NCBI RefSeq assembly: GCF_964204645.1
Contig: NC_134030.1
Coordinates: 8,289,122-8,353,121, forward strand
Reading direction: 5' to 3'
DNA: 64,000 nucleotides
Source: Tubulanus polymorphus
Lineage: Eukaryota > Animalia > Nemertea
In this document: positions 1 to 62,649 of the stretch, one piece after another
Layout: every line of letters begins with the position of its first letter
How positions within the stretch are numbered: position 1 is the stretch's first letter
The notes under the pieces: model-generated
Told to the model about the DNA's origin: nothing
The model's input: the letters and a program-made list of their open reading frames with translations, nothing else
Database searches by the model: none
Position numbers and translations under genes: made by a program

Positions 1-1239
1 ATACGTCATCAATACTGGCGTTCCAAATAACAATTAAAACTGTAAATTTTGGCGATAATTTCGTAATTTTTTAACTCTTATTCTATTTTTGATAAATCTT
101 AATAATCATTTTTTGAGAGGATGTGCCCTACGTCATCAATATATCATGGCTAGACTAGTTGCTTGTCAATTCAATTCAATTATCGAAATATTCAATCCAA
201 ATAACTTAACTGATCCTTAATGATTAATAGTATAATTATCCTAACAATATGATTTATATTATTGTATTAAGCCATATATGTGTTATTTTTCCAGGCGTCA
301 ATAAACTTTCAAGTTAGTTTTCTTGTTCCTTAATGTAACTATGACATAACCACTGAAACAATAAGTCTGTGTTATGACAATATATAGAGAATGCCACGCT
401 GATATTATATAAGATGAAGGTTTCCTTTAAGCTTAAATAATTAATTCATTCGATGTTTCGACTGTAACCTAATCGGGAATCTTCAGGAATGAGATATGAA
501 ACCGTGAGACTTACTTACATTTTTACTATGATATTTTATTCATCATTTGATCAATAAAGTGTTTTTTCTAATTCTCAGAAGAAATAAGATCCCTATTTAT
601 TGACGGTGTAGCGTAATTCGGAACGATTTTATATTTGCGATGTCCTCTCACTGTTTCCCCGCGACGACGCGACCGGGTTCGAATACCGCTCCCGCGGAAA
701 TATGATTCACGTTTCGTGGCAATTAATTGCAGGGGTGGCCTATAGGTCCGATTTCGCGGTATAGTGGGTCTTTTGTGATCGTTTTGAACGCCTTGAGTCA
801 CACGCGAGCAATATTACCCTGTATATGTAGTCATATTTTCTCTATTATGTACCCGTGTTTTGTTGTCTACATACCTCCACCAGCGCTGTACACAGAACCC
901 GGCTTTTGCAGTTTGAGAGTTTTTAATCGAAATCTCAGCAGACGACTGGCTTGTGTTACGTCTCCATTTCTGATTTCTGATTTGAGGTGTTTCCATAGCA
1001 GAAAACGTCGGCCTGCCATCTTTCGGATTAGCGGCGGCTTATGGATTATGGATTATTTATAAGGACTTAAGTGGATTATCTATCGTTGATAAACAGTCAA
1101 ATTTGGATTAGTTTATCGGTCCGATATTGTTTTGTTGGTCATTCAATAGCGTATGTGCCAAAACACGAGTTGTATAAAATAGCGCACTCTCTATCTATCT
1201 GTTGGATATTTGGTGCGTGGTAATTTTTCGAGAGGAAAA

Positions 1240-4200
1240 ATGAACGACGATAAAGGCTGTTGGGAATTCATCTGGGGCAAATTCTTTAAGAAAAATAATG
1301 GCCATCGCCAATCGAAAACAAAATCGTCGAGACAACGACGAAAGAGTAAGCAAGGAAAGGAGAGTAAGTGTCAATTCTGATAACGTATTGTTTTTTCCAA
1401 TCTGAAAAGCATTGTTAGATTTCTTAATGGTAGTTACGGTAGTTCAGGTTTCTTTGCTCACGGGTGATGGAGGACTTATAGTAGTGGTAGTAGTTGTAGT
1501 TGTAGTGTAGTTGTAGGTTGTAGTAGTTGTAGGTAATTGTTGTAGTAGTTAGTGGTTGTAGTAGGCAACATCGTTATAGGCCTAGCCTTTTTTAGACTCA
1601 TCGCTGATGGAGAGCTCCACTTGAGATTAATCTGTTAATTGTGTTTAATTAGTTGCATTTGTGAAAATCGTCTGTTTTCGTCATAAAACGTCAATTAAGT
1701 CTCCTCTATAGTTGATCTGATATGCTCGATTATTTTAGTTCCTTTTCGTGTGATTTCTTGCCTTGCGAAATTCCATGTAAGAGTTTTCAATATTTATTGG
1801 GCTATAGGCCTATTCATGGCTGTACCTAGCAGAGGCAGTTACCCCAGCCCCTGAAACTGGAAAGGTGCCCTTTGGAAACTGGAAAGGTGCAAGTATTATT
1901 GTTATATCCAATAGAACTGCCCTTTTCGGGATTCTCTGCCCCCCAAATTCAAGTGGCCTTGCTATTCCACGACTGTTCTTCTAATTGAGTCTCGTATGGA
2001 GTAAAACCCTTCCACAACTGATGAAATGATCAATGCAGTCTTTGAGAAATCTTGTGATTAAGTCCGAATTAGATGAAAATAAGGATATAAGTGATCGGGA
2101 TTAAGTGGATTTTACGACAGGCTCGGCATTTTACTGCTCCGCTGTGTGGTACTAGGGTAACGAAGGACTAGGGTTTGGTTATGAGGGAACCGTACAATTA
2201 CGGACAACTAAAGGGCAATGATTCCGTTTCAGTGGTCTTCACTTATTCGGCGTAGACATCGTTGATGTAGGAGTAAGTTTATAGGTAAGCGTTATCTAGA
2301 ACTGTCAGGCGACGTTGACATTTCCATCGGTCTACTCTCGTGACATTTCCATCGGTCTACTCTCGTGTAAACACGAAATACGAGATTTATCAACGTAAAA
2401 TATTCATGTTGAACTCGACATGAACTTAAGGAAATTTTTCTCGTTGACGCGAAGCCGAACGAGTTCGAATAACGAAGCGTAGCTGAACATATTCGTTTAT
2501 GTCGTACAGAATGAAATAACCCACAGTGTAACGTATTTAACACTGGGCAAGTGCCCGTGAAATGTAATAACACATTCATACATATAGTTGTTATGCCTCG
2601 GACGATAAACAGTTCAAAAACTCACTGCAAATGAAATAGATTATAATTCATGTATATATGTATATATATATATAAGAAAAATTATACCTTGTTTTTGTTT
2701 TTCCTAATCGGCCGGCCGGGTCATCTTGTAAACTGGAATAAAATTTATAATCAGTTCATTGCTGGGTCTGTTGTGTTTAGCTTGATCATGATTTAGAAAA
2801 AAAAAGTTATGTACAGGGTAGATAGGCGCTGGCTGGGAGAAACAAGGTAATAATTCGTTTAGCCCTTATTATCCTTTTCCGCGTAATAAGTTTATAATTT
2901 GAAATGCCTGATGTGTTAATTCTGATAGGATGTATCTTGTTTTTTGAGAAAGTTTTCGCAGTTTAGAATAAAGAAATATTTGCTTCATAGTTTTGAAGAT
3001 TATGTAATCGTGACCGACTTCTATTCAAGGCATTTGGCAAACAAGAAATGAGCAATTTCGTGCAAGTCCAAACACAATGCAGTTCAGATATATAAACGTC
3101 TGGACAATTTATTGGCAATTCTCAAGGATTCTTTGAAATATGAATCCTAGCTGACTAATATGTTTACTACAATCACACGAAGCAATGCGTTCTGGTTCCC
3201 CCTTGACCCCGGTACTCAAATCTTTTGTTCGTTGGAACAAAAATACGAAATACTGGTTTTATCAGGTATCGTGTAACAGTACGAAAAACATTACTCATCG
3301 CAAAAACTGGTTAAAAACGTTCTGCTCAAGTTAGACTAGGTTTACCGTTTTATTATCTTTGTACAGTTGACCTTGCTTGATATAGGCCTATCTCAATTGG
3401 GATATCATTATGTCGATGACTTATGTAAACGATGACTTATCCAAATCACGAGTGCTGATTTGAAAATGTAATTGGGAATTCACAGAAACGACTTATGCAA
3501 GTTTGACTGTAATCTAGTACGAATGCATGGAGAATGTTACCAGGGGCGTTTCCAGGGGGATTCCAGGGTGTCCAAGTTTTCTTTTGCTTCTAACACTGTT
3601 ATTCCAAAGCATTGTGAAGAAAATTAGTAGTAGTAACTTGTGTGTCACATAATCTTAAATTTCAAACACCTACGTCACTAAATGCATCTCGAGGCTTCTA
3701 TTTTCCAGACACCAAACGCCACCCCCCCCCCAAAAAAAAAAATCAGTTGTTACACAGTTGATTAACATTTACTTTGGAATCCCTCCATGTCTAATCCTGG
3801 ATCTGCCCCCTGCCACAGTTGTTTCCACAGGTGATAATTTCATGTTTCACCAGACTTGAAAAAATCAGTTATGAAATATGTACATTCAGTACTGTTATAC
3901 ACAGCGTGTACTGTCGAATAATTGCGAATTGTTACAATGGATTCTACATTTCTCGTGAAACAATATACATTAAGTCTCTCCGGGGTTCTAGAACACGAAC
4001 TAACGCTGCAGCAGCGGTTCTCATTACCATATATTTATCATGCAGCCGATATGGCCTTGAATCTGTCAGGGACGTTGCCGCTGACGATGATGAGTACTGC
4101 CGTTACACTGCCTTACAGCCCTGTATTTCGTACGACGGCAGTTCGCCTCGTAAACCGGCATTGATAGACGATGACTATTTCACCCGGAACTGCTCGTTTT

Positions 4201-7200
4201 ACCTGGCTCTCTGATAACACGAGAGAACGATGATGAATAGCTCTGTAAATCAACTGTTTGTATACGTGGGGAAACTAATTCAATACGATTATTCCCATCA
4301 TGTATTTTGAGCTGTATTGATTGAGTGTCGTTGATGGGTGTCATATTTTTTCCCGATGTATGAATGTTTGCTTGGTAGCCATTTTGAAACTATCAGTTTT
4401 TCGGAGCATTCTCATCAATTTCTTCGACATTTACTATATAACGTGACACGTATTTTCGCTTGGTAGCCATTTTGAAATCATCAGTTTTTTTCGAGCGTTC
4501 TCGTCAATTTCTTCGACATTTTCTTCATGATGTGACAAGTTTTTATCAGCCATTTTGTAGAGATGGCGATAGTACACGGCCTTCGCTGTTTTTATTCGTC
4601 TTGTGCCGAGGAGTAACTAGTGCTCATGAATATCTCTCGCTCAACAGCAGATTCAGCAGATTTATCCGATTACCTAGAGTATTATAACGAGAGACTGAAC
4701 TGAAGTTGAACTGGTTGCAAATCAGTCATCGGGAGAAGAATGGCAAATCATTTAGTCTCGACCCTGGTCTAGACCGATTTATAACTTCTAATGCATTCAT
4801 GTGAACTGATGAATGATTTGTATAAGTAGTAATTAGTTCAGATAGTGGAATACTTGTTTCTGAGTAGTGTTAGCTTATCTAAAAATGAGCGGTCCACACT
4901 CTTTCAGCTGAGATCTGACCACTAGTATACCCATGGCTGTGCAGCTGGCCTGTACTAGGGCAGTGGTCATACTGTAGCAGTAAGCCAATACCTGTACAGG
5001 GATGAATTGAAAATAGCCAGTTCTGCATCTGTAGAGTTGCTCATGGAAATCTGTCGGTGTCATTTTAAACTCACAAGGTCCTAGTTTGCTAACTTTTTCC
5101 TTCAACAGGTCTAGCTTTTGGGAAAAGGGGGATGGAATATTGGGTCACTACTCAAACGAATTTGTGGCCCGCATAAATGGCACAGACATCATCAGGGCTA
5201 ATCTGTTGTCTAATGTTTGAAAGAATTAGATCCATTCTGAGCATTTTCCTGGTTTGAATTGAGAACAGTATATATGTATGCTCACAATTTTACCATTTTC
5301 TGATCTAAAGTCTTCAAGAGAAAATTCTAAGGTCACTCATCCGTAAAAAGAGGGCGCACTTACCCCACGTGCACCCCCCCTGGATGCTCCCCTGCAACTA
5401 CTGCCTATATTTTCAAATGTTTCATGTCCATACATTTTATATTTTGTAGGTAGCGAACCGTCAATCGGCAGCGGACAGAGCGGACAGAGCGGACATCATT
5501 CATCGTCGATATCGAAGCGTTCGTTGCTCAGTCAAGACAACCTGACGTACGGCAGCACGACGAAGCCGTCGAACGGCACGGCTGCGAATGCCGAACGCAA
5601 GAGCACGTCGGAATCGGAAATCAGCTCGATGACCGCGCCGAAACCGATACAAAAACAACCCGTATCGAACAAATCTTCCAACTCGAATACCGATATAGAT
5701 GGCGCCGCCGACGACGATAATAGTAAATATGCGGATAATAACAATAAGTTCGTTAACTCGAAAAAAGGTGGCGCCGACGATGTCGTCGACAATTGTACAC
5801 CGAACGATATTCAAATCGAATCGATTCTAAATTGCGCGGATATCGTTAAGAAACAAACGACTGTTTACTCGAACGGTGCCGTTACGCGGACAATAGTCGG
5901 CGCGACGACCGACGAGGACGATGTGTTCCCGTCCGTTCATCGGCGCCTCGGCTCCTCCTGCGGCGCCAAGCAGAACGTCGTCAACGCCGTCGATAACGAA
6001 TCGACCGATATATTCCCAGACAATAGAGATGCGGTGATCGCTACGAGCGCGAGGAAAGCGGCGATCGTCGTTCCGCTCGCTAAACGCAAGGATAGCATGG
6101 TCGGCAAGGTATGTATAGGCCTATGAACGCTAGAGGTCTAATGTCTGGTTTTGAAGTGCGCGTTTCAGGTGAAGCAGGGGCGGATCTTGGAGAATTGGAA
6201 GGCCAGGTCCAGAAGAAAAGAAAAGGCACTTTTCGAATAATGCAGCTAAATCAGAGGCCTCAATTGGGGTTCCACATGGTTTCGCCCTTGGTTTTAGATA
6301 TTTTTGAAGAAATACATGTGTACATCCAAAAAGTTGTCATTTCGGAGGGGATGAGTACAAAATTAGCCCATTTTAGAAATCTCTGTCACGACGAAAAGGG
6401 CCACCTCACTGGGAAGGCAGGCGTCTGGACAGCTGAGACTACCCCACCCCCTAAATCTGCCATGTGACGTCATGACATAGGAAGTCTGGATAGATAAACA
6501 TTGGTACAATGGTGGTAAGTTTGTCCCTTGAAAACGTTATCGGTGCGGCTTGTACTATAAAACTATCATTTCAATTTATAGAGGGTAGTTCAAAGTATGT
6601 GCGAGCAAGACAAGCTCATTTTGTTCCTCTAACCTAGGACCAGTCTTGATTTTCTGATATATTAAGCGAAGCTTAATCTGTTCCATAAGTTTAAACAGGG
6701 ATTTTCGATGATGATTTGATCAGTGTAACGTGTAGCTGGCATGATGTCAAATATTTATGTAGAATTCAAAGAAAAAGATTGACGAATCTCATTTCCTGCG
6801 TAATGAGCCAATGAACAGTTTTTTCCCTATTCAGCGGGGTTTTTTTTTTTTTGTTCTTTAATCGAGATCGTCAATCTTTCTTCGAAAACTAACACTGCTT
6901 TACAAGCGTACCGACGAACGAGAAACCGATGAAGCGTGCCACTTAACATTCTTGACGCGATTACGTTCGTTGCGAAAATAATTTCGTATTTTTGTCCCTT
7001 TTCAAATCGAGCTCCTATTGCGGGGTTGACACATCTCATCGGAATCTTTGCCTATCGCTTTAGATATTGGCTAAATTCACCCGGAAATAGTTATATCTTA
7101 CTAAAATAGAATAGATTTTTTTCTAGATAGCACGGCCTTATATATAATTTGCTCGAGTTTATTCTTGGGAAGACGCAATTACGTCGTAAAAATTTGTTGA

Positions 7201-39200: not shown

Positions 39201-42200
39201 CGTGTGCTTTGTAGGCGGAAAAGTACACTATTCTTGTTTAATTGATTTCAGCCCTTGACCAGGCGGAAAATAAATGGCCGTGTTTTGAGTGCAATCAACG
39301 ATTTAAGACGTCAGCTCTTCTGCAGCACCACCTGTTGGAGCACGACGATGACAACACTAATCCTTCCGCGTCGATTCTCAATCCGCAAGCGTCGACCTCC
39401 GGTGAAGGCGACTCTAAATCGAAAAAGGTGCGTTTCAATGTTCCACAATAAACCCTTGATGTGACATTTTTCGGCTTTACATAACTTAACAGTCTCGAAT
39501 ACAAATTTTATCTTTCTGTGTATATTGGTTCTTGGGCTTTTGTTATGAGACCCTTATTCTCTGACTTTCGGCTGCTTAGCTTCGTTAATAGTGGGTCGAT
39601 CTTGATGAAACTTTGGTAAAATGATAGTGTGGGGGTTTAGTTGTGCAGTGCAAAGGATGGGCCCGATGCACACACCATGGCTGAATAAGCACTAAAAACT
39701 CATCCCTGTAATTGAGGAACTTGACAAAAATTAGCTTTTGGTCCTAGATACAACATATCCAAAATGGGAACTAATGCATGGCAATTTCGGAATCTGAGAC
39801 CGAGAACTGTTGTCGCCTATGTCTTCAAGCCGTGTTTCTTTTACAATGAAAAGAGTATTTTGTTATTCTGGGTCTACTGTATACCAATATAGCTTTGTTG
39901 AGTTTGTGAATTGAATTTTGCAGGATGGGTCTGGATCAGCGCATTCTTCATTTCAAAACTGGAAGAAGAAAAAGACAAATATATTCTTGAACAAGTAAGT
40001 CATTTAAAAATATGCAAAACGCTTAGGTAAATAATGGACTCTAATCTATTAACATGTTCACTGCCAGCTAGGAATGTACCCGTGCTTTACGTTCAGTTAC
40101 CAGTGCCACTACGAATATATTCGTAGCTCATTCTAGCTATTTACAGTTAAATATTTGCACCTAGGCACATAGGGATGAAACAGTTTCTGATTGTGAACAA
40201 ATTCAGCTTCACTCTCAATGTTCATAGTTGAATTTCGCGCAAAAGCTGACTAGTTAATTGCTCCAGTGCTGCCCTACGAGTTTGTTTGTAGTGACAATTG
40301 GGGCGGCGCTGTATTATCAAGCTGGCAGCAAAAACGATGAATTGACAAATATTATGATATCTCGTTCATTTGTACTTTCAGACATTTGAAGAAGGTGAAA
40401 TATGGCAATAGCGGTGGCGAAACCTCAAAACGACCTATGAAATCATTGTTCAAGAAAAAAGAAAGTAAAGTCAATGGCGGTGCTCAAGAATGGGTTTGCA
40501 CTAATTGCGATCTGACCTTCGACAATCCCAGTTTACTGAATCTCCATACGTTGACGCATGCGGCTGAAAATGTCGGACTCGAAGAGATTAAATTTTTGGC
40601 CGGTGAAATCGCGAACATCCCGGCCGGTATGGAGAACATGGATTTGACCGGCGACTCGCACACGCCGGAAGGGGAAGACATCAGCACGCTCGGCGGTAAC
40701 CAAACGATGGAATGTCCCGTGTGTAAGATGCTTTTCACGTCGAAGTTGGAGCTGATCGACCACGCGAGCACGCACGGCAAAGCGAAAAAGCCGCCTGTCC
40801 TACGGCCGTATAAATGTAGCAGTTGCTGGAAGGCTTTCCGCTGCGAGGAGAGTCTACACAAACATCTTCTGTGCCACGGATCGGAGGACGCGAAACCGTT
40901 ACAGTGCGTCGTGTGTTTGAAGCGTTTTATGAATAACAGCGCGCTCTCGTGTCACATGAAGACGCATTCGTCGCGTAAATACTACATGTGTCCGGTTTGT
41001 CGAGAGGAGTTCGACGTCGTGTCGAAGCTGCGCGAACACACGGTGAAACACGAGGTCAACGGCCAGTATCCGTGTCCTGAATGCCCGAAAATCTTCGCCG
41101 AATTCAACCAGATACGCAAGCACATGCGCGCGTTCCACTCACAGAAGTCGTACCCGTGTCCCGAGTGCCCGAAGGTGTTCCCGCGGCCCGACAAGCTGAA
41201 GCTGCACTTACTGCGCCACTCGTCGCATCGCGAGTTCATGTGCGAGCTGTGCGGCCGCCAGTTCAAACGTAAAGACAAACTGAAAGAGCACACGCGTCGC
41301 ATGCACACGGCCGAACGCGAAGAGAAGAACACGCAACAAAAAGCGCGTCCGGGAAAACGTCGGTTCACACCGAAAGTATCTCCGTCGGATTATCACCGAT
41401 TCATCTACAAATGTCATACCTGTTTGCTCGGGTTCAAACGACGAGGAATGCTCGTCAATCATCTCGCGAAACGGCACCCGGATGTCAAGCCGGAAACAGT
41501 GCCCGAACTGAACTTACCGATACTGCGTACGCAACGCGATTACTATTGCCAGTACTGCGACAAGGTTTACAAGTCGAGCTCGAAGCGCAAGTCGCACATA
41601 TTGAAAAATCACCCGGGCGCTGAGTTGCCGGTGAGCGGTCGCAAGAAAGACAACGAATACGGCTTGGACGTCGAGTGCGGCACGAGCGACGGCACGTACT
41701 CCCAGCCGGTCGGCAGCGTGACGACCGTGCCGCATCCATGCGAGTGCTGTCACAAACAATACGCGAGCAAAGCGAAACTGATGCAACACCAACGCAAGAA
41801 ACACCCGGGTCTCGTTGCTCCGCCGAAAGCCAGGCGCATTCTCGAAACGTTGAACACTTTGCAAATGCAGCATTTGGCGCCGATGCCCGATGAGTTGCCG
41901 ACCGTACAGCAAGTGCACGTGCAGGGTCTACACGATCTACAAGCGGCCGATTTATTAACGCAGGCGATGAGCGAACTGACGCAGTCGATGAATGATTTTC
42001 GTCAACAGCCGAACGCCGAGTTGCAGGTGCCGCGACAAGCGACGCTGGTTCAGCCGGGCGGCCAGACGACGACGATCGAATTCACCCAACTCGGAGCGGC
42101 TTTGGCTCAGTTCCAGCCGCAAGCCGGGGCCGTATCGGTGACTCCAGTCGCGAACGCCGGCCAACAGATGATTCACTTCACCGGAACAACTAGTCAACAA

Positions 42201-42299
42201 GATGGATCCATTCCGCAAAGTTTAACCGTACCTGTCTCAATTCAGCCGATTCCTCAACAGCAGAAATGGCCCAGTTATACGTACACCACAACTCGCTGA
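33219..42299 (+). CDS. PRDM10: PR/SET domain zinc-finger protein PRDM10 orthologue, ~1315 aa, 15 coding exons (33219-33485, 34327-34509, 35103-35255, 35847-36098, 36218-36296, 36417-36536, 37180-37289, 37412-37517, 37817-37957, 38037-38149, 38599-38784, 39097-39169, 39252-39427, 39924-39994, 40382-42299)
   Basis: Zinc knuckle WCEDC..ECPYH...VLSRAWASLP. PR domain GVFAKKSIPKNTQFGPF...CNWMMFIRP...EQNLVVYQ...ELKVWYAAHYA. C2H2 array with PRDM10-typical FKRKDKLKEH, GFKRRGMLVNHLAKRHP and YCQYCDKVYKSSSKRKSHILKNHPGAELP. All junctions are phase-consistent. Confidence 0.93.
33517..33638. mobile_element. Short MITE with GGGCCRGTTGCTCAAAAGTTGGTTA TIRs
   Basis: GGGCCAGTTGCTCAAAAGTTGGTTA ... TAACCAACTTTTGAGCAACCGGCCC. 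Confidence 0.75.
34655..34985. mobile_element. Cluster of ~2.5 copies of a GGGCCGGTTCCATAGTC-TIR MITE with internal TTAAGAC repeats; a partial copy lies at ~13635-13740
   Basis: CAG|GGGCCGGTTCCATAGTC...GACTATGGAACCGGCCC|CAG, followed by an inverted copy and a third start. Confidence 0.8.
36736..37000. mobile_element. Second copy of the CAGGGTGGCCA-TIR MITE (in a PRDM10 intron)
   Basis: CAGGGTAGCCA...TGGCCACCCTG with the same internal TCAGGGAA motifs. Confidence 0.7.
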
Positions 42300-47030: not shown

Positions 47031-48497
47031 TCACGTCCAGAAATTCCGCTCGAACACGGCACCCTCGACTTCTCCGCCGAGCAACGAGCGTTTCACTTTG
47101 GCGGCAAAGTCTTCCTTGGGTTCGCAGGACACGATCGGCGAAAGAATGTCGTCCAAATTGGGTTGATAGAATAGATACAAAATTCCTTGAACGAGATCTT
47201 CTAGCGTGGCGAGCGGTTGCCATTCTTCCAGCACAGAAACGCACACGTTATCTTCGTCATTGTCGTCGTAAAATGGCAAACAGTTTATGTTCGGGTGGTA
47301 GAGTTTAGTCAGACATATGACGCTGGGGACGTTAAACGGATATTTCTCGTCCAAAATAATCTGAAATACAAAAGACAAACCAACAAAATCAATATATATA
47401 TTCGAAAGAAATTCCATTTCAGCCGAGGATGTAAAGTTGTTGAGAGTGTATATATTCAGGGGTGGATCCAAAGGAAGGGTGCAGGGGTGTGCCTCCCCTT
47501 TAAAAGTTCAAGTTGCCCTGAAATATATACATATTACAGGAAAATGAAGAATAATGTACTGATAGCACAATGTTTAGCTTCATAAGCTTGTTTTCTGTGT
47601 TTCTTTTAGGGTGTCCTTTTAATCATATGATATCCCTGATATTTCGAGCAACGTTTCGGCTATAAAATAAGCCATCATCCTCTACTCAATAACTTGACAT
47701 CTTTGGCCAGAGCCATCGGAAGGATTTTTTGAAAATTCAATCGCCGGAGATGCGTTTTGGGGCCATTTCACGGTCTCATTCACAGAAGCATGAGAAGTCG
47801 TGTACCAACCACCTAGGAGAACGACGAGCTGCTACGCGGTACAGCGTGCTTTTGAAAAATTGTTTGTTAAGCGAAAAAGTGGGGCGGCTTTGGCCGCCCC
47901 TGCCGCCCCTGTTCCGACGGCCCTGTTGGCTGAGATTATTCAGGGAACATACGTATTCATCTTACACGGATATTATGTATCTTCCTATAAAACCTATTAT
48001 CTCAATCAAAAACAAGTCCTGCATTTGTGTCCAAATACAACTCGAGTTATCAAACTAAAGTGGATTTAGATTGTACCATAGAACTCAAATCAAATCTGAT
48101 TTGAGTTCTATGATTGTACACAAAGCACGTGTTATCGAGACGATCTACATAATCGATTATTCATAAAATTCATTATTAAGTAGCCTATACAGAGAAATAG
48201 CCTCAATATACGTAAATGATATTAATTGTGTCGGGAATATCGGATTCGCACCAATGGCACGGCCCCCATTTTGTTTCAATTACTTACCTTGAACAAGAAT
48301 GTTCCACCGTGATAATATCCTCCATTTGGTTTAATTTCTACTTTGAATGTGTCAATGCGTCCGTTTTCGAAATCGTGAAATATCTTCGCTTGTTCGTTTG
48401 ACAAATTGTCAATATTTCTGATTAATTCCATGGTGTCTTTTTGCAGACGATTGTTTATCAAATCCAGATGGTTGGTCCCGGCAACTCCCATTTGCAT
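47031..48497 (-). CDS. NEDD8-conjugating E2 (Ubc12/UBE2M/UBE2F)-like enzyme, ~179 aa. Exons 48497-48288 and 47360-47031
   Basis: RLQKD..EL, IKPNGGYYHGGTFLF, YPFNVPSVICLTKLYHPNI, catalytic NVCVSVL, WQP..TLEDLVQGILYLFYQPNLDD, and C-terminal SLLGGEVEGAVFERN similar to Ubc12. One phase-0 intron. Confidence 0.85.
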
Positions 48498-48729: not shown

Positions 48730-48781
48730 ACTATCCACACTGATCATGTGACACTAGTGACGCGGTCACTTCTTAGTTTGC
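48730..48781 (+). repeat. Split direct repeat A1 (left terminus)
   Basis: ACTATCCACACTGATCATGTGACACTAGTGACGCGGTCACTTCTTAGTTTGC, identical to 55636-55687. Confidence 0.95.
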
Positions 48782-48947: not shown

Positions 48948-49194
48948 TTTGGTGTAGTCATCTTGGATGAAACACTGGGTTTATTAGTTTTAGTGCAGTC
49001 ATTTTGGATGAAACACTGGAGTTTATTGATTTTAGTGTAGTCATTTCGGATGAAACACTGGTTTTTATTTATTTTTGGTGCGGTCATTTCGGATGAAACA
49101 CTGGTTTTGTTAGTTTTAGTGCAGTCATTTAGGATGAAGCACTAGGTTTGTTAATTTTGGTGCAGTCATTTCGGATGAAACACTGATTTTGATG
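48948..49194 (+). repeat. Tandem array of six 41-43 bp hairpin-forming units in the retroelement 5' leader
   Basis: Consensus TTTRGTGYAGTCATTTCGGATGAAACACTGG plus a T-rich linker. Units start at about 48948, 48989, 49031, 49074, 49115 and 49156. Confidence 0.92.
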
Positions 49195-49981: not shown

Positions 49982-50374
49982 ATGGAACCGGTGGTTTTAA
50001 AATCGTCAGACGGTTTGAAAACGGTGGACATCATCCCCATGTTATTAAAATTAAGAGGGTTAGATTTGAACGTAGATCGGCCTACAGCCTTCGCTAGGTT
50101 CGAAAGGCTTAAGCCACTAGAAGCAGCACCGAGGAAGTATGTGGATGATGCGGTATTTTCTCTGACTGGTAAAAAGATGAATGATCTGTTAACGCTGGTG
50201 GACTGGGAGGAGACGGAAGGTCCGCTGCTAGCGCACCACTTGATAATTTTTGCTAACGAGAACGCGAACAAGCTCCCTCAGGTACCAAAGAAAAGGAAGT
50301 CTGTGCCCGCACCTAGTACAAGCACGGTCGGTGCGGAGAGTGATGCGGTAACCCCAGATGGGGTTTCTGAACCG
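49982..50374 (+). CDS. Retroelement leader coding exon (131 codons), predicted to splice onto the downstream ORFs
   Basis: ATG lies 2 nt after acceptor CTGTTTCAG (AG at 49978-49979). The exon ends at CCG|GTGAGT (phase 0). Read-through after the donor is T-rich and stops within 14 codons. Confidence 0.75.
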
Positions 50375-50849
50375 GTGAGTGTTTTTATTTTCTCAGTTTT
50401 ATATCTGTATTTGTAGCCCCCGGGTTTGGTCGGTAGGCCTGGACTGGGTAGATTTATTGGGAAATTAATAGACATTTGTTTAAAACATGTGTAGCTCTGT
50501 GCGTTTAAGGTTTATTGCTCTGGGCCTTGCACATACCAGGATTTAGTGGGTACAGAATGGGGATCTGTTTTGGTTAAGTTAGAGGATTTTTCGTTTCCTT
50601 TACTGGAGGAGAAAGTTTATAGAGATTAGGTTTTTTAAAAGACAGCTTCTGAAAATGTAAGACGCAAGATGGAATGTAAAGATAACCCATTAAGATGTAG
50701 GTAATGGTATGAAGGAGAAGCATGAAACATTTAGGATGATAGATTTGACTATAGATTGTTCGTTAACCGAAATCATGGCGATCTTTTAAACTATTTACTG
50801 CGAAGTCATGCTGATTAGTCTATATTTGTATTTATCTCGTGTGTTTCAG

Positions 50850-51392
50850 GACAAAAAATTGTTAAAGCGTCTGGAGGAACTCGAGAAGAAGGTTACACAT
50901 CCAGCTCGTTCAGTAGAGAGCGCTCTGATGCAGGTGAGGGCAGCGCTTCAAAGGCCGGGCTCTTTCTTTGATCCATACTTCCTTCTCGGTTGTATGGAAG
51001 GCTTGGTAGAGGTGGCAGCTGAAACCACAGATCCGAAAAAAGGGTATTTTGATTCTGTGCTGAAAAGTATCAAGAGAAATATCGATTCTCCAGACTTACC
51101 TGCTTTGTGTAGGCGTTTGATTGGCTACCCGGATGATGAAAAAGTGGCATCAGTGGAGGCAAAATGGGCTAAAAAGCCGCACACAAACAATTATTACCCA
51201 ACTTACGGCTATTGGGGTGGGTCGGGTGTAGGCAGGGGATATGTTGGGCGCCGAGGTTACGGTACAAGGAGAGCAGGGAGAAGTTCCAGGGGGAATTGTT
51301 TCTTATGCCGCAAAGAGGGTCATTTTGTTCGCGACTGTCCTGAGAATAAGCAACCACAAGTGGTAACGAAGACTGAAAGTGAGGTTGTCTAA
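50850..51392 (+). CDS. gag: Gag-like ORF with CCHC zinc knuckle
   Basis: CFLCRKEGHFVRDC knuckle preceded by an RG-rich tract. Starts at acceptor GTGTTTCAG|GAC in phase 0. Confidence 0.85.
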   Translation, partial: DKKLLKRLEELEKKVTHPARSVESALMQVRAALQRPGSFFDPYFLLGCMEGLVEVAAETTDPKKGYFDSVLKSIKRNIDSPDLPALCRRLIGYPDDEKVASVEAKWAKKPHTNNYYPTYGYWGGSGVGRGYVGRRGYGTRRAGRSSRGNCFLCRKEGHFVRDCPENKQPQVVTKTESEVV

Positions 51393-51638
51393 ATGAGTTA
51401 GAACTTAGAGTTAGATTGAATTTAGTTTTGGATGATACGTAATGTTATATTGTGTTGTTAAAGATGTTAAACAAGGTTATTTTCTCTCCTTTAAATTGAT
51501 CATATGTTGGATAATTCATTTTGTTATCGGTTGTTTGTGGTCGGTTGGCTTTGTTGTCACAGGCTATCTAAGTCTGTTGTCACGGCTTATGTCGTGCTGG
51601 CAACGGGGCTGGACTGATGGACCTTAGTGTCTTTTCAG

Positions 51639-53819
51639 GATTTTGTTCCGTTGAAGATACCTGTGTGTAAAGACGTGTTTTGGGTTGGTGCTAGAGGTTC
51701 ATCCGTCCAGTTACCGTTGCCTGAGGTCGTCTCAGCCGAGACCGTTTCGAAATCGGCGGACAAGTATAACAATTTGACAATTTTTGACCTGCCCCTCAGG
51801 GACCCGGAGAATTTCGTCGCAGGTGAACTGAGTCGCCATCTGGAGGAATGGGAATTTATTCTACGGCAGTCAGAGGATCCGTTGTCAGACACGATTTTAT
51901 CTTGGGTGCGAGATGGTGTTCATATCCCAGATTTCTTTAAGAGGTTTAAGGGTCAGTTTAAAGGCAAGACGTATGATTGTGATGCGCCCCCAAAAACGGT
52001 GTTCCCGAATTCTGGAAACTGCGAACAATTTGAAGATTTCATTTCTACAACATTAAAAGGTCGGGTGGCTAATGGATCACTCAAGGTCTGGGGAAAGGTT
52101 GGGGTCGATCCACCCCCGCATTTAGTTATGCCCTTGACGGTTGAACCCACGAAACCCAGAATGTGCCACGACGAACGATTTCTAAATCTATGGATTCGGG
52201 ACTCGCCTTTCCATTTGGAAACTTTGGTAAACGTACCTCGCATGCTACATAAAAGCGCGTTTATGACCTCTGTCGATGATAAAAGTGGTTACGACCACAT
52301 CAGGGTAACACCGGGAAGTGAGGTGTATTTGGGAATCAGCTGGAAAGGTTGGTATTACGTTTACACCGTTATTCCTTTTGGTTTTAAGGCCTCGGCCTAT
52401 ATATACCAGAACACTGGCTTGGTTGCAACGGGTTACCTTCGAGACCTAGGAGTACAGATAACTCAATACATTGATGACCGTTTAAATGGGGAGCTTTTAA
52501 GTTCCTCGGCTAGGGGTTTAGAATCCATCACAAAGGCTAGGTTAGCTCTATATATGACTGCCCAAGTTTTAACAAGACTAGGGTATTTTCTAGGCCTCCA
52601 TAAATGCGTCCTGGAACCGTGTCAGTTATTAAAGCATTTAGGCTTATTTGTTAACACTATAGAGGAACGTTTTGAGATCCCAAATGATAAGGTGGTAAAA
52701 TTTGCCATTTTAAGGGACAATATTTTATCGTCCGAATTCGTTAACATTAAAACGATTCAGCGGTTTGTGGGTAAGATCATATCCTTCTCGCTGGTTGTAC
52801 CAGCTGCGAAGCTTTATACAAGGGAGTCAAACTTAGCTATTTCTAAGGCATTCAGAAACTCGAGACTCATTAGGGTTGAGGGCAATCTCAGAACTGAGAT
52901 AGAGTACTGGAAGATAATTGAATGTTTGCCAAGGGTGGTAAGGTGGCGCCAAGAGTGGCATGTCAGAATTCAGATGTATACGGACGCATCCTCTTATAGA
53001 TGGGGTGGGATAGTCACGATTGGTGAGCAGAGGTTTGAGCCCTCCGATTATTGGCCACAGGAGCTGGTACAAAAACCCATTGTAATAAAGGAAACCTTGG
53101 CACTTAAAAACGTGTTAATGGTGGTTTCTGATAAAATTAGAGACAGTAGAGTAGACGCTTTTGTAGATAATAAAACTATGATTGCGGCATGGGTTGGTGA
53201 AGGTTCCAAATCACATGATCTGTCAGAAGCAATTAAGCTTTTGTTTGAACTAACAGCAGAACAAAATGTGTTGTTGAAATTGCATTATGTACCGTCAAAA
53301 GAGAATCTAGCAGACGCTCCCTCGCGAATTTTGCGAAAATCGGAATGTATGTTATCTCCGCGTATATGGCAGCACGTGCAACGTGAATATGGGGGTGAAA
53401 ACGGACACTCGGTTGATTTGATGGCCCTTGATTCGAACGTAATGGTAGATTTGTCAGGCTCTCCACTACGACATTTTACGCCAACGCCATCTACTGATTC
53501 TAGTGGTGTAGATCTGTTCGCACAAAATCTATGCGACGAGGTTAATCCATATGTGTTTCCGCCAATTTCTAAGATACCGGCGGTTTTACGATTCTTGGCA
53601 GACGCAGTCAAAGAAGCATCTATCGTCATTCCAGAAATCTTTCCGAGGCCATTCTGGTGGCCTTTGGTAACCTCTCGTGCATCCAAACGTCGCCTGCTTG
53701 GCAAAAAGGGAGATGTGGGTGTTTTGAAATATCCGACTAAAAAAGGTTTTGTGGAGGATACAGTAGGCATACCGTGGGATCTGTTTGTTTATAGGATAGA
53801 TTTTGATAGATTAGATTGA
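51639..53819 (+). CDS. pol: Reverse transcriptase - RNase H - methyltransferase-like ORF of the DIRS-type element
   Basis: RT motifs DDKSGYDHI, VIPFGFKAS, QYIDD. RNase H motifs YTDAS, IKETLA, FVDNK, YVPSKENLADAPSR. MT-like motifs VDLMA...GVDLFAQ...YVFPP...PFWWP. Uninterrupted frame opened by acceptor CTTTTCAG|GAT. Confidence 0.93.
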   Translation, partial: DFVPLKIPVCKDVFWVGARGSSVQLPLPEVVSAETVSKSADKYNNLTIFDLPLRDPENFVAGELSRHLEEWEFILRQSEDPLSDTILSWVRDGVHIPDFFKRFKGQFKGKTYDCDAPPKTVFPNSGNCEQFEDFISTTLKGRVANGSLKVWGKVGVDPPPHLVMPLTVEPTKPRMCHDERFLNLWIRDSPFHLETLVNVPRMLHKSAFMTSVDDKSGYDHIRVTPGSEVYLGISWKGWYYVYTVIPFGFKASAYIYQNTGLVATGYLRDLGVQITQYIDDRLNGELLSSSARGLESITKARLALYMTAQVLTRLGYFLGLHKCVLEPCQLLKHLGLFVNTIEERFEIPNDKVVKFAILRDNILSSEFVNIKTIQRFVGKIISFSLVVPAAKLYTRESNLAISKAFRNSRLIRVEGNLRTEIEYWKIIECLPRVVRWRQEWHVRIQMYTDASSYRWGGIVTIGEQRFEPSDYWPQELVQKPIVIKETLALKNVLMVVSDKIRDSRVDAFVDNKTMIAAWVGEGSKSHDLSEAIKLLFELTAEQNVLLKLHYVPSKENLADAPSRILRKSECMLSPRIWQHVQREYGGENGHSVDLMALDSNVMVDLSGSPLRHFTPTPSTDSSGVDLFAQNLCDEVNPYVFPPISKIPAVLRFLADAVKEASIVIPEIFPRPFWWPLVTSRASKRRLLGKKGDVGVLKYPTKKGFVEDTVGIPWDLFVYRIDFDRLD

Positions 53820-54006
53820 AAGATTAAATTGACATGTTTTCCTGAGCGATAACATGGTGTTGCGTAACGGTGGTCTTTATTTTCTACTCTGATCTATGCA
53901 CGGTAAAATCCGGATGCATAACTCTGCTTTTACGTTAATAAACGTTTTGTCTTTTCTGATATACCTCGTTTATTATGGTTCTTTTAAGATCTGTCATATT
54001 TTACAG

Positions 54007-55346
54007 GATCTGTCTCTGCATCACGAGAACCATTGTGCGGACTGTGGACATCGCTCGCGACAGCACTCAAATTTCTGCTACAATTGTGGTTCAGAGTTAA
54101 GCAATGCGGATGGCGAGAACGGTACATTGCTAGCCTTACCATTAAAAGATTTGGATGCCCGGTTAAATTCTATGTCAGTGAGTGAGCGCAACTCTGTTTA
54201 TGGCCGAAAGAAGTCAAAACTGGAAGAAGATTTGGTCTTGTTCCTCAGGTCACTGCGCCCATCGAGATCCTTGTTGACGGCATCACCTAGGGATATCTGT
54301 AGGTTCATGGTATTCAGGGATGCTCGGGGTAAAACAGTAGTACACTCTTTAACCTGTCCGGTACGAGGTTGGAAAGCAGTCTCGAAGGCCTCACCAAGGA
54401 CCGGTGGTTGTTTATGCCCCAAAAGACTGGCAGCCGGAACGGTCGATTCCTATCTGGGTCAGATAAGGGCAATATTTAACTCGATTGGTAAAATTGGCTG
54501 TTGGCATCCCGAGCGCGGAACTGGGAATCCTACCATATCAGAAGAGGTAAAACAATACCTGAGAGTGACTAAGAAGGAGCAATCGGTGGCTATGATCACC
54601 CCTAAACAAGCCGTCCCAATGTACCTTAGCAAATTGACGGCAATGATTCTCTCTATTGATAAACGCTTGGCTGTCCCAGATTTACCCGCGGTAACGGAGT
54701 ATATTTTAGCAAGGGACCAGGCTTTCTTCAAACTTGATTTTCTAACAGGACATAGGGCGGCAGACTTAGGTCGGTTTTTGACAGATGGGATCTCTCAGAG
54801 TGACGATGGAAGGGTAATCATTTTAAATCTAACGTTCGGGAAAACACTGCGGGATGGTTCGGTTTTGACATCCGTAGTTACTCGTTTTAACAACCCGGTT
54901 CTGTGCCCGGTTTTGGCGATTGAAAGGTATTTTGCTGTTGTAAAGGCGCTTGGAGTTGACCTTGGGGGGGGGGTTACTTATTCCGGATAACGAATAAAGA
55001 GGGCGCTATCGTTAATAACGGACTCGACTCGAATGCGGTGGGAAGCCGTTTGAAAACTTACCTAAAAGAAATTTGTATGTATGACGGTGAGACCCCGCAT
55101 AGTTTTAGGGTTGGATGCTCCGTTATGTTGGCTTCTTTGGGCCATACATCTAAAGAGGTGACTTCTTATATTGGTTGGAAGCATCAGTCCATGGCAAAGC
55201 ATTACACCAAACATGCTTGTGTGATGCAGGGTAAAGTCTCTGACTCTCTCGGTCAGGCTATGGGACAGTTAACTGATAAAAGTGTAGAATCATATCGCCT
55301 GAATAATGCTACAAGCGGGTTTAAACCAATGTTTTCATCCATGTAG
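54007..55346 (+). CDS. Tyrosine recombinase with N-terminal zinc ribbon and ALOG domain; frameshifted at a G10 run (54964-54973)
   Basis: CADC..FCYNC zinc ribbon. ALOG-like GKTVVH..C...CLCPKRLAAGTVDSYLGQIRAIF...GNP...EVKQYLR. Catalytic residues in GHRAADL, FGKT, HSFR, IGW and KHY. Changing frame at the G-run restores GYLFR and joins ORF 55038-55346. Confidence 0.88.
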
Positions 55347-55569: not shown

Positions 55570-55687
55570 TCGTTTTTTATCCCCAATCACTACATAACCG
55601 CGGAACGAGAAACCACCGATCAGTGTGGATATTATACTATCCACACTGATCATGTGACACTAGTGACGCGGTCACTTCTTAGTTTGC
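55570..55687 (+). repeat. Internal B1-A2 junction of the split direct repeats, containing a 14-6-14 palindrome (55618-55651)
   Basis: GATCAGTGTGGATA-TTATAC-TATCCACACTGATC. Confidence 0.95.
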
Positions 55688-55823: not shown

Positions 55824-55893
55824 TCGTTTTTTATCCCCAATCACTACATAACCGCGGAACGAGAAACCACCGATCAGTGTGGATATTATACTA
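55824..55893 (+). repeat. Split direct repeat B2 (right terminus)
   Basis: 70 bp identical to 55570-55639. Confidence 0.95.
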
Positions 55894-58800
55894 AGCGCTT
55901 TAGTTCTATGGATATGCAATGGTACTGGGAATTCCATGACGAAAACTTGACGGATCGTTGTGCAATGCATTTGAAGTATTAGATGATAATGAATGTACAC
56001 TAACCGCATTAGACAAAAATATTTATTTAATCGAGAAAATAGAACTGCGACATTTTTTTCCAATTAACTCAAGAATTAAATGGGTTAGTTGTTCTAAACC
56101 TTGGCATGGCATTTGGTATGATATGAACATTCTTATCTGTTTTTTGTTGGAAGGATTGCCAAAAAGTAAAAAATGCCATGCGAACTAAAAATTAAACGGG
56201 GTTCGAACCAACTTATGTTTTTGGTGCAAAAACCTTGCAGACCTGGTAACATAAGTACGAAGGGAAATACCATAACAATTAGCTAAAAAGTTGTTGGGAC
56301 AATAATTTGAACTGATCGTGTGAATTATCTTAGCTCAGATCGGGATTCGAACTAAAAACTTCATGCAAAATCCGTTGCCAGACAATGGCGCCATCATCTG
56401 GGCTTGTGTCGAACTAAGAATAAATTTGCATAACAAATGTCGGGATGCAGCAGGTAGTGCGTCGTGTGGTAGATTTAGTGGTTTAAAATGTCAAATTAAC
56501 GACGTTCACGATGAGATCTGGCGTAACGAGTCAACAGAATCAAAAGGTAAGACTGATACGTCGATTTACGGGGTATTCTGCGCACGGACTGGCGCTATTT
56601 AACCGCCGAGTCGTCTTTCTTCACCCTGTTAAGTTCTCTCCTAAATTCTTACTGTCTTCTGCTCGTAGTAGGGATTTCAGGTTGAAAATTTCTATGTGTC
56701 CTATGTGTCTTTTTAATAGGTTAAAATGAAGAAGGGGATAGCATAAGGATATAGCACTTTACAGAATCAAAATCGGTCAAGCGGTTCAAAAGTTATAAGC
56801 AATTAAAGGGTGGAAATTTGGGGTATATTTGTCATTCGATTGCGCAATACACTCTAGTTCATTTTCAATTAAAGAGTCAGACAGGAAGTGTCTAGGTTTT
56901 ACTGCTTTTTAGCCTGATTAAAGTAGTAAATTCAACATTAAAACTAATATATCTCCCAAAATTTCTATCCGATTGAAACCAAACTTGCTCAGCACGTTGT
57001 TGGTAAAAAGAGTATTGAGATTCTAGAAGTATTTATGCAAATATGTAAATTAGGCTAATTTGCATACTCATTAACTAATTAATACATACTACAATACCAT
57101 TAATACACTATATGAGAATTTCTTTTTCAAGATAAATGATACTGGAATACATCCAATATCAATTTTGAGGTAAATACAATGGAGACATCGAACAACTAGG
57201 TTATACCGGTTACCGTGGTAACCATAAGGTGAGTATTGAGGCGGCCATCTTGAATCTAATTAACTTCCACTGAATTGTAAATAGCTCATTCGATATGGCC
57301 TTTAGGCCTATATTGTTAACAATAATTCCTCTTCTAGAATATCTCAATGTTCCTAAGATCATATTCCTGCATTTTGAGATGCTCAGATACTAATAATAAT
57401 CATTATATTTTCAGATCCTCACTTGCCGCAGAAGAATCAGACAATCATTTGAAGAGATTTATCAAGTTCAGAAAAAATGAATGTATTAAAATGAATGTGT
57501 AAACCCTTGTTATTCTTTCAGAGATCCTTAAAAGACATCTCGAAAAAATATCTTTATCATGATATCTCAGATTGTGGCTCACAAGAAGGCGGCCATCTTG
57601 TTTTATGTCGATATTTCATCGGAAGTGACCAATTTCAACAAAGTATGTCATGTTTGGTATCTAATGAAAGGTCTTTTTCCTGGAAGTTTCTTCTATTGAA
57701 TAAGAATGATGACAAACTAGCTCAATTGAATGTATTAGACAAGTATTAGTCTGTAAATATTGATCCCAGAAGATAAGATGCACAATCATGAACATTAGGA
57801 CATCCGTGTTCACATCTATCATTTCACAACGTAGGGCCTAGCCGATCAGTGAAAATAATCCTAACATAAAATGTTTCACTCATCAGTATGGCCACCCATG
57901 AAACATTAGTACCTCATAGTCATCAAAGTCAAAGCTGTATTGGTTTGCCTATTGATGGAGGTTTCGGGAGCCGAAAGTCTTTTTTACTAAAACGCAAAAT
58001 CTCAAGGCCTTAGTTATATAGTTTTTTTTCTGATTTTGAGTAATATATTCCACAACATCAAGAGGATAGACCTACGTAGGCCTATGAGAGGTTAGATTTA
58101 GGTGACCAACATCATTTGGCTCGAAAAACCATTGATTGGGTGTTTTAGGCCTACTGCACTACTGGCGGCAGTTACATTGCAGTGGTAGGCCTAGGAGGCC
58201 TCGAGTCAAAAAAGCTCAAATAAGTAAATTTCATTTCAGGAGCTATCCTAGCATTTCCTTTAATTGTGAAGATGAATATTTCAACTTATTAGGCAAAGGA
58301 GATTGGGAAAAGTAAATTTTTGCTTGGGAAAAAATTTGCACAAGACAAGGCCTGGATTCTGGTGGAAAATACTAAAGAATTTGCCATTCGATAGCCATTA
58401 TTTTACTTATACTTGGCCGATTTCTTAATAAAGAATAAATTTATTGAGTAACATTGTCGTTTTAGTTGCTAAATTGCCATTTAGAGTAGCAAAAACGAAC
58501 CAGGAAGTGTTTTAATTGATCAGCTGGCAGCCGGTGTGGAGCCGGAAGTGACCCGGATGTAAACAATTTTAAGCACCTCGCCAACTTTAGGTCAAAATCC
58601 GCGAAAGACTACTAAATCAATCATAAAAGTAATTAAAGAAAATGATTAATTAAGTATTCAATTTTGAAACGTATGGGTGTACTTTTTGTCAATTATTATA
58701 ATTTTCGCATATTGAAGCTTTGAAATACGTTCATCGCTTAAAAATAGCAAATACACGGCCGGGCAAAAAAGTACGCACCACTACGTTATAGCCGAGTAAT

Positions 58801-59557
58801 GTTTTTAAAATGTTCCGAGGTCAAATAATCAGCCAATCAACAGCGGGCTTGCGGATTTGACCTAAAAAATTGCATGTGGTTTTCACGTGATTGAAAAATG
58901 CACGTTCAAACATGGCCGCCATTTTGTTTCCTAGAAATCCGGCGATGCGCGCTGAACTACGATTTATTTCTCTGTAACTACGCAAGATACACTCATGAAA
59001 TTTACACCACAACAAATAACCGGTAAATTGAGCATACTGAGCAAGTTTGGTTTCAATCGGATATAAAATGCGTTTTTTGTGAGTGAATAAAAATTTGAAG
59101 CGAGGAAAACGCTAATTATGACACATTTTGATCACGTGACCTGAAATCCCTACTCGTAGTTGGATGATGATGGATTGTGGATTTTCTAGCTGCGTCACAA
59201 CGCAATAAACCCATCAATTCTGAACTGGAAACCTTTTTCGTTTTAAAAATCCATGAGATTGAAACCATCAGTTTTTCACAGTGACAGATAGAACTGAGAC
59301 AAGTGTTGTCAAGTTGATAACCGCGCTGTGTTGGTCTCTTCTGCCTCTGGCGTACGCTAAGCTTACCTGCCACACAAGTTTTGCTGGGTTCATTCAAATT
59401 TGAAAAATGATTTAAATGGTGTAGGGCCTCTAAGCATAGAAGCCTATATACATTTATGGAATTGGGGATTTTTGTCATTAGGGTTGTTGCCAGGTTTTCC
59501 TTTGAAGCAGAACTCATTTTTTGGACATGGTGTAAAAATCGGGGGTGGATCCATCTA

Positions 59558-60056
59558 CTGTCTGTCACACCTACTCTCCGTGCGACGTTTTGGTCCGTAA
59601 TTTCGTTAATAATCGGTTTTTCTACCTTTATTATGCATCAATTTGTTCAGCGAGGAATTTGCATTCAGAAATAAACAACAATTTTCACTTAAGTTGTTTT
59701 TGTTTTCATTTATGAGCGATAGTTTACTCAGCATACGCTCGCGTAATGCTAAAAAGCCGCTCCGCGGACGCTCGGAAACGTTACAGTGACGTCATCACCT
59801 GCTCATTAGCATATCAAAATACTGTAGGTGGCGCCAAGTGACGGGCCATAAAAGCCGTTTTTCAGCATTACGCGAGCGTATGCTAGGTAAACTATCGCTG
59901 ATAGAAGAAAACACAAACAAATTTCTGCCAGTTCATGATTTATTTCTGAATGCAAATTCCTTACTGAACAAATTGATGCATAATATTTACAGATCAACCG
60001 ATTATTAACGGAATTACGGACCAAAACGTCGCACGAAGAGCATGTGTGACAGACAG
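59558..60056. mobile_element. ~500-bp fold-back element with long imperfect inverted arms
   Basis: CTGTCTGTCACAC...TGCGACGTTTTGGTCCGTAATT...GCATACGCTCGCGTAATGCT is mirrored by AGCATTACGCGAGCGTATGC...AATTACGGACCAAAACGTCGCA...GTGTGACAGACAG. Confidence 0.85.
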
Positions 60057-61212: not shown

Positions 61213-62649
61213 ATGACATCTCGCGGGAGACGTGTGGCTTTATGTAAAGATCTCTGCGACTGCCGGGAAGACTACCTGATTCTTGATGCAGTGGTATCTA
61301 TAATTTGAGATGACTCGAGCCGAAAAAGGGTTATGAACGATTACGCGCGGTTGTATTTATCGGGAATAAACTTTCTATTCTTTCGTAAAACTAGACTGAA
61401 ACATATCAGAGGCAAATTGAAAACCTTAAACTCAAAAATCCAGGGACGGGCTCAGGATAACCCTGTAGTTAGTGCTAACCGTGGTTAGGCATAAATGGGC
61501 ACAGGAAACCGCTGTTAGCTAACCTTGTCTTCGTGTGGCTTCTTATTTCAAGCTGGTTAGCCTAACCACAGATAAGCCACTAACCACGGCTAGGCTAACA
61601 GGGTTTGCCTGCGCCTGCCCCGAGCTTCCTCATTCAAATTGTTTTCAAGTGTTTTCAATGCTAATTATTAGTTGATTTGGACACGCTTGAGAACTACCTC
61701 AGCTGTGTAACTTCTAAGCTTTCTAATATTTTGGGTATAACTGAGAATTGTTGCTCTGAATTTTGGCATTTTCTTCAATCTCGAATACTCTTTGAAACGT
61801 CCTAAAACTCCACGATGATCAAGTTGTGTTAACCCTAAACATCTAGGTGCCTATCCTGATATTTAAGTTGAGAATCATAGTGTTTGTATGCCGGAATTTT
61901 AAGGGTATGACGTTGTGGCTGCTGAATTAGTGAGGCTTACAATCCCGCAAAGAATACAGAAACTAGCTTGATTTTGGTTTTGGTGTAGGGTAGTCATCTA
62001 TTTCTGGTAGGGCAGGCAGTGCAAATATTTTGTAAGGGGTGGTTCAATCCTCCCTAAAATAAATGGGAACTTAAGCTTAATTTTGGTGTAGGGTAGTCTT
62101 CTATTTCCGGACAGGGCAGTGCAAATATTTTGGAAGCGGTGGTTCAATCCCCCAAAAAATACAGAAACTTAAGCTTGATTTTGGTGTAGGGTAGTCTCTT
62201 CTATTTCTGGTAGGGACAGTGCAGATATTTCATAAAGGGTGGCTGATTTTCAGAATGAATGGAAGTAAAAATGAAATGGGTGGCCACCCCTCTAAAACCT
62301 GAACACTGAATCAGCTTTATGTCAAATTGCTGCTTAAATCTTAGGTTGATATTCAGTAGAATGTGTAGAAATACTTTTAATGATAGAGATAATTTATGAA
62401 ATATTGGATGACGTTAATTGTTCTCATTTCCCCGAAAGACCAGCTTGCCGTCTCGGCGCTTTTTTTAAAAATTGTCTCTATAATTTCTGTTGTATCTATT
62501 ATTTCCAGTTCAACTATAACCCAGGTGCGCAGCCATTTTTACCGCAATCGGCGTCTGCTATCGATAGCGGTATATCGGATTCAGATGAGACGCTCGCTGG
62601 ATTCAATAAATCACAGATCATGTTGAAAAATGCCACTAAAAACGGCCAG
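61213..62649 (+). CDS. Probable 5' exons of an unidentified gene continuing beyond this point (tentative exon 61213-61293; exon 62509-62649)
   Basis: 62509-62649 has a strong acceptor (TATTTCCAG) and donor (CAG|GTAAGA), an open frame FNYNPGAQPFLPQSASAIDSGISDSDE..., and the CpG-rich composition of exons here. The upstream ATG exon is phase-compatible but has a weak donor. Confidence 0.4.
61955..62245. repeat. Tandem repeat, ~3 copies of a ~95-110 bp unit
   Basis: TTTTGGTGTAGGGTAGTC..CTATTTC.GG.AGGG..AGTGCA.ATATTT recurs at about 61978, 62081 and 62178. Confidence 0.8.

Follow-up and report, generated by a model that had tools for sequence, protein, structure and literature searches.

A palindromic putative attachment site and one-sided crossover scars in a Pat1-like DIRS retrotransposon of Tubulanus polymorphus

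Tyrosine recombinases cut the two strands of DNA at opposite edges of a 6-8-bp overlap, leaving 5' overhangs. Cre needs a full second site and identity of the spacer. The integron attC site is single-stranded and folded, and it has extrahelical bases and a pair of binding boxes. In the standard model of DIRS retrotransposons, a short junction recombines with a matching target and no duplication arises (PMC3266345). The DNA specificity of DIRS recombinases was untested as of 2020, and the cDNA of DIRS-1 is single-stranded and antisense (PMC7192593). Pat1-like (PAT) elements, in their echinoderm form, share with the element studied here the layout A1-ORFs-B1A2B2, the zinc finger in Gag, the RT/RH/MT arrangement, a recombinase on the same strand and the absence of a target duplication (PMC4157794, PMC3266345). 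DIRS1-like elements, in the circular junction model, share the short match between junction and target and the lack of a duplication (PMC3266345, PMC7192593), but they carry inverted terminal repeats (ITRs), an internal complementary region (ICR) as well as a 3-bp junction, whereas the site described below is built from split direct repeats and has an invariant CT at the edge of its spacer. The Captain of fungal Starships is likewise a eukaryotic tyrosine recombinase, with a short terminal match to the target, no true duplication and terminal inverted repeats; unlike our element, Starships are excising DNA transposons without a reverse transcriptase or split repeats (PMC10104507). In the literature searched, split-repeat elements are nowhere described as having a palindromic site with a 6-bp spacer or a one-sided crossover; older core papers lie outside its coverage, so a prior description is possible.

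The stretch of DNA analysed (64 kb, referred to as the window) contains a 7.16-kb element bounded by two pairs of split direct repeats, A (52 bp) and B (70 bp), in the order A1-B1-A2-B2, both pairs being 100% identical. Its features are as follows:

48730-48781, + strand: split direct repeat A1, left end; begins with the right arm; inferred element boundary at 48732
48948-49184, + strand: tandem repeats of 41-42-bp units in the 5' leader
49982-51392, + strand: Gag-like coding region of two ORFs (49982-50416 and 50808-51392), with a CCHC zinc knuckle in the second
51627-53819, + strand: pol ORF, 730 aa, with RT, an RNase H-like part and a C-terminal methyltransferase-like domain (53304-53816)
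53896-55346, + strand: tyrosine recombinase, in two frames in the window copy (53896-54990 and 55038-55346)
55570-55639, + strand: split direct repeat B1, with the left arm and spacer at its end
55597-55672, no strand: imperfect inverted-repeat extension around the palindrome (71%, and by folding)
55618-55651, no strand: putative attachment site (arm 55618-55631, spacer 55632-55637, inverted arm 55638-55651)
55637/55638, no strand: inferred crossover in the putative attachment site, between C (55637) and T (55638)
55636-55687, + strand: split direct repeat A2, 100% identical to A1
55824-55893, + strand: split direct repeat B2, right end, 100% identical to B1; whole spacer kept; inferred element boundary at 55891

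Judged by its layout and domains, the element is a Pat1-like (split-direct-repeat) DIRS retrotransposon in the scheme of PMC4157794. The DIRS1-like hallmark, inverted terminal repeats with an internal complementary region, is absent from it, and the methyltransferase-like domain, which Ngaro elements lack, speaks against Ngaro. The zinc finger in Gag matches zf-CCHC, the RT matches RVT_1, and the recombinase, on the same strand, matches ALOG and Phage_integrase. The RT and recombinase matches bear out an earlier reading made from the letters without database searches (the sequence-only reading), which had seen a DIRS-type element with a tyrosine recombinase. The recombinase frame of the window copy is broken near a run of G (54964-54973), whereas in five other natural copies the frame is open over 483-489 aa and includes the catalytic motifs. 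The last 171 aa of pol show a resemblance to Dam-like clusters, with atlas neighbours that carry PF05869 (Dam; scores 0.93-0.95), and methyltransferase-type motifs (DLMA, NPYxFPP-type) are conserved in relatives. A Pfam scan of the domain gave no match, and its structure prediction (mean pLDDT 41) was too poor for a fold search. The presence of a methyltransferase-like domain after RT/RH in pol is moderately supported by these resemblances. Pyrimidine-rich signals resembling splice acceptors were also seen upstream of the second gag ORF, the pol ORF and the recombinase (49982-54010).

Elsewhere in the window we noted a C2H2 zinc-finger ORF of 637 aa (40386-42299), a 2.1-kb stretch between 31-bp inverted repeats (56962-59067), a fold-back element of 500 bp whose arms measure 118 bp (59558-60056) and a repeat present three times at a period of about 100 bp (61949-62261). 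The 2.1-kb stretch and the fold-back element look like non-autonomous DNA transposons.

The palindrome at 55618-55651 lies where repeat B1 meets repeat A2; its two 14-bp arms are perfect inverted copies of each other and enclose the 6-bp spacer TTATAC. Coordinates, arms and the asymmetric spacer agree with the sequence-only reading, as does the structure of the ends: A1, on the left, has only the right arm, and B2, on the right, has the left arm and the spacer. This is the geometry expected of a loxP-type site (arms of 11-14 bp, spacer of 6-8 bp). With spacers of 4-10 bp counted, the chance expectation for such sites in the 64-kb window is about 0.003; the palindrome is the sole case with 14-bp arms, and one other site has arms of at least 12 bp. 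Another palindrome, at about 48081-48108, has 12-bp arms and a centre of 4 bp.

To judge conservation, ten junctions from sister families and other animals were aligned. The same B/A layout occurs in two sister families in this genome, in Branchiostoma floridae, B. lanceolatum and GCA_949826985.1, and in two ENA assemblies. The spacer is 6 bp long and ends in TAC in all ten junctions, with ATA/TAT as the inner arm in nearly every case. Further out, the arms vary between junctions yet remain paired through compensatory changes: at the true register 100 of 120 cells are paired, compared with 16-41 when the alignment is slid, and 8.7 of 11 outer arm positions pair within a family compared with 5.1 of 11 across families. 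Because the junctions are related and were picked for a findable site, and because five other elements (L074/L075, L077, L080, L083 and L084) have no clear B/A site, this pairing is strong support rather than a formal test. A chance palindrome is excluded by the expectation of about 0.003 and the pairing kept in ten junctions. The palindrome is very probably the attachment (att) site of the element, and its conservation across families and phyla strengthens this part of the sequence-only reading; the loxP-like specificity and the ACTA core attached to it there fared differently, as shown below.

The B-A junction can fold into a long hairpin, as expected of any palindrome. It might act mainly as a hairpin or terminal signal in reverse transcription, with a linear cDNA, ending in T(+1) and the last C of the spacer, that the recombinase joins to the target by a half-site reaction without an intact circular att site. 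DIRS-1 cDNA is indeed mostly linear, and its circle junction could not be amplified (PMC7192593). Besides the long hairpin folds, the arm mismatches are compatible with such a role: in plus-strand reading there are seven G-T and one A-C (p about 0.07, the families not being independent), as would suit an RNA fold, and the same polarity of ends as described below is predicted. However, the 6-bp spacer found in all ten junctions is the spacing of a tyrosine recombinase site (PMC3212892), and targets copy the inner arm bases (see below), pointing to recognition of the arm by a protein. We regard this role as unlikely. The same 7:1 bias of the plus-strand mismatches toward G-T and away from A-C lends no support to a minus-strand hairpin.

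The family is represented in this genome by nine insertions, eight full-length copies and one internally deleted copy of 600 bp. The full-length copies are about 98-99.9% identical, and since the pairwise identity is 98.1-99.9% (seven compared), the family is young. The 600-bp C4 copy (L037 1000-1603) consists of A1 and about 530 bp of leader fused to B2, and lacks all ORFs and the internal B1/A2 site. Two copies (L030 and L033, G000:C6:12368098-12385695) are 99.93% identical and lie head to head, 3.3 kb apart; with host flanks that differ at all four ends, they are independent and very recent local insertions. The C3 copy (L035 about 2080-4740) carries a 2.66-kb insert within the gag region, Mutator-like by its long terminal inverted repeats and apparent 9-bp target duplication. 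In run X2, a loose end behind L037 position 1603 has a left-end flank outside the nine assembled sites, with AC before T; this flank is a further insertion in another sample.

For the target analysis, left and right flanks were joined for every one of the nine young copies and compared with the element site. Element and target overlap by 2 bp (CT) to 9 bp, and the invariant target bases are C(-1) and T(+1), both 9/9. The sequence-only reading had proposed an ACTA crossover core, and ACTA does stand at both ends of the window copy. However, it is present in only 5/9 sites, which, with overlaps that range from CT to 9 bp and CT alone invariant, rules it out as the core. Right-arm positions +1 to +5 are matched by the targets in 35/45 cases (11.6 expected), whereas matches to the left arm are at chance level (30/126; 32.8 expected). 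Spacer positions -6 to -2 match above chance (25/45 compared with 13.7 expected, p 0.0004), so the whole spacer counts somewhat, and host spacers differ from that of the element at up to four of six positions. Judged by these matches, the targets resemble the right half-site only, and targeting is loose and not loxP-like.

Two empty sites were available. At the C4 copy, a contig of run X1 joins the flanks and skips the 600 bases, with four shared letters, at a depth of 22 compared with 22-27 for the adjoining flank contigs; run X1 may come from the assembled individual, and the insertion would then be heterozygous. Next to the C1 copy, which lies within a tandem repeat, an adjacent unit has the uninterrupted site. 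Neither site (C4, C1) showed a target duplication, which rules out duplication on insertion at these two places and agrees with the expectation of the sequence-only reading.

The two ends of the insertions differ in a constant manner. The whole element spacer is kept at the right end in 9/9 copies, and host bases stand in its place at the left end in 9/9 (two-sided p 0.004 against even resolution). In the sister families, which were read at their ends, mismatches to the element spacer average 0.85 at 20 right ends compared with 3.4 at nine left ends, and the same polarity was observed in elements of Branchiostoma floridae (L078) and GCA_949826985.1 (L079); two relatives, L074 and L077, have no clear site. 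At some right ends (L047, L067, L068, L070 and L078) the spacer is followed directly by a host base that is not T, and among old copies with decayed ends the C is present at 6/9 left ends and the T at 14/20 right ends. Since some right ends thus lack T after the spacer and some old left ends lack C, the switch from element to host is placed at the C^T bond: it is always at this bond, the right edge of the spacer. Repair biased to the donor or to the host is excluded as the cause of the polarity, because the two ends go opposite ways.

A full two-strand exchange over a mismatched spacer would leave a heteroduplex, so that replication would give the observed pattern and its mirror image. This bears on the exchange proposed by the sequence-only reading, which is Cre/loxP-like, two-stranded and site-specific with an ACTA core. 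The window site shares with loxP the inverted arms around a short asymmetric spacer and the total of 34 bp; the perfect 14-6-14 geometry, ACTA at both ends of the window copy and weak, non-significant sequence matches to Cre (E 0.09-1) fit such an exchange. However, ACTA is found in 5/9 sites only, host spacers mismatch at up to four of six positions, the targets have no left-arm match, and the products are one-sided in 9/9 where unbiased heteroduplex resolution would give both kinds. A loxP-type partner, with both arms and an identical spacer, was not found, as the left arm is at chance and the spacer variable; in contrast to the spacer identity that the family rule asks for (PMC2817482), the partner here is a degenerate half-site with a mismatched spacer. 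With targets that are loose half-sites and a crossover always at one spacer edge, the idea of a loxP-like site-specific system did not hold, and a Cre-like exchange is very unlikely, though an artificial att x att reaction in vitro may still be efficient.

A two-strand exchange might instead take place in a very short core around CT, in the manner of the 3-bp circular-junction model of DIRS1-like elements, so that the 6-bp centre would not be the overlap. The invariant overlap here is 2 bp, and the published DIRS model has a 3-bp junction matched by the target (PMC3266345). On the other hand, the arms of tyrosine recombinase sites stand 6-8 bp apart (PMC3212892), and in every family CT lies exactly where arm and spacer meet, the position that one of two cuts staggered by 6 bp would have. 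We consider this improbable, though less so than the Cre-like exchange.

As tyrosine recombinase cuts flank the overlap with 5' overhangs, the right edge of the spacer would be the minus-strand cut, an assignment that assumes this usual geometry and a 6-bp overlap. The crossover of only one strand appears in the products, which are genomic scars and not tagged strands. We therefore favour a reading in which the recombinase joins the minus strand only and host repair or replication rebuilds the plus strand; as a whole, we give this best explanation a probability of roughly 0.6. Points that weigh against it are the above-chance match to the rest of the spacer, the plus-strand G-T bias in the arms, the decayed ends of old copies and the two relatives with no clear site. 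Reverse transcription would rebuild the B-A junction in the integrating copy, and the recombinase would bind its arms and a host site resembling the right half-site (C^TATCC-like). The minus (bottom) strands would be cut and exchanged at the right edge of the spacer, where one or a few matching bases would be needed, and the equivalent plus-strand exchange across the mismatched spacer would not be completed. Copying of the minus strand by host repair or replication would then place the host spacer at the left end and the element spacer at the right end.

Joining of the minus strand only is consistent with the single-stranded, antisense cDNA of DIRS-1 (PMC7192593), and it has precedents. In integrons, single-strand exchange with replicative resolution is established: at attC x attI, one strand is exchanged and the other is rebuilt through replication (PMC3458562), as proposed here. 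The attC substrate is a folded single strand, a form that the donor here may or may not share. For IntDOT of CTnDOT, one or two identical bases suffice beside the first cut and the rest of the overlap may mismatch, a minimal homology like that seen here; IntDOT then completes a second, homology-independent exchange, whereas our family shows one-strand products only (PMC2817482 for IntDOT). The scars fit equally a single-stranded donor and a double-stranded circle with a failed second exchange. A B-to-A joint in run data is uninformative as evidence of a circle, as the internal B1/A2 junction gives the same joint.

Related elements in the collection show further arrangements. L059, L060, L062 and L063 are solo A-B remnants of a sister family that resemble solo LTRs; they could stem from recombination between A1 and A2, or the recombinase could have excised the rest at the internal site. 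A more distant family has the stretch enclosed by the inverted arms of the junction flipped in L045 (about 660-700, minus strand) relative to L049; this family has a different core and the same end polarity (L049, L058). L051 and L053 belong to a distant family of the same genome, with an RT that is about 26% identical and has many matches; they contain an extended inverted match in their interior, as is typical of DIRS1-like ITR/ICR elements.

Within its known family the window element is nothing unusual; what this analysis adds is a defined site, together with a predicted cut and an asymmetric mechanism that can be tested. The specificity of DIRS recombinases and the form of the integrating DNA are directly testable with short substrates, for which the 34-bp site, the predicted cut position, the target consensus and arms that vary naturally among several animals are at hand. 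The loose natural targeting lowers expectations for a loxP-like tool. More tentatively, Pat1-like elements across animals may integrate minus-strand single-stranded cDNA directly, with the B-A hairpin as a half-site, one strand exchange by the recombinase at C^T with a host half-site, and resolution by replication. If true, animal nuclei would host a reaction like that of integrons, one that needs no double-stranded circle.
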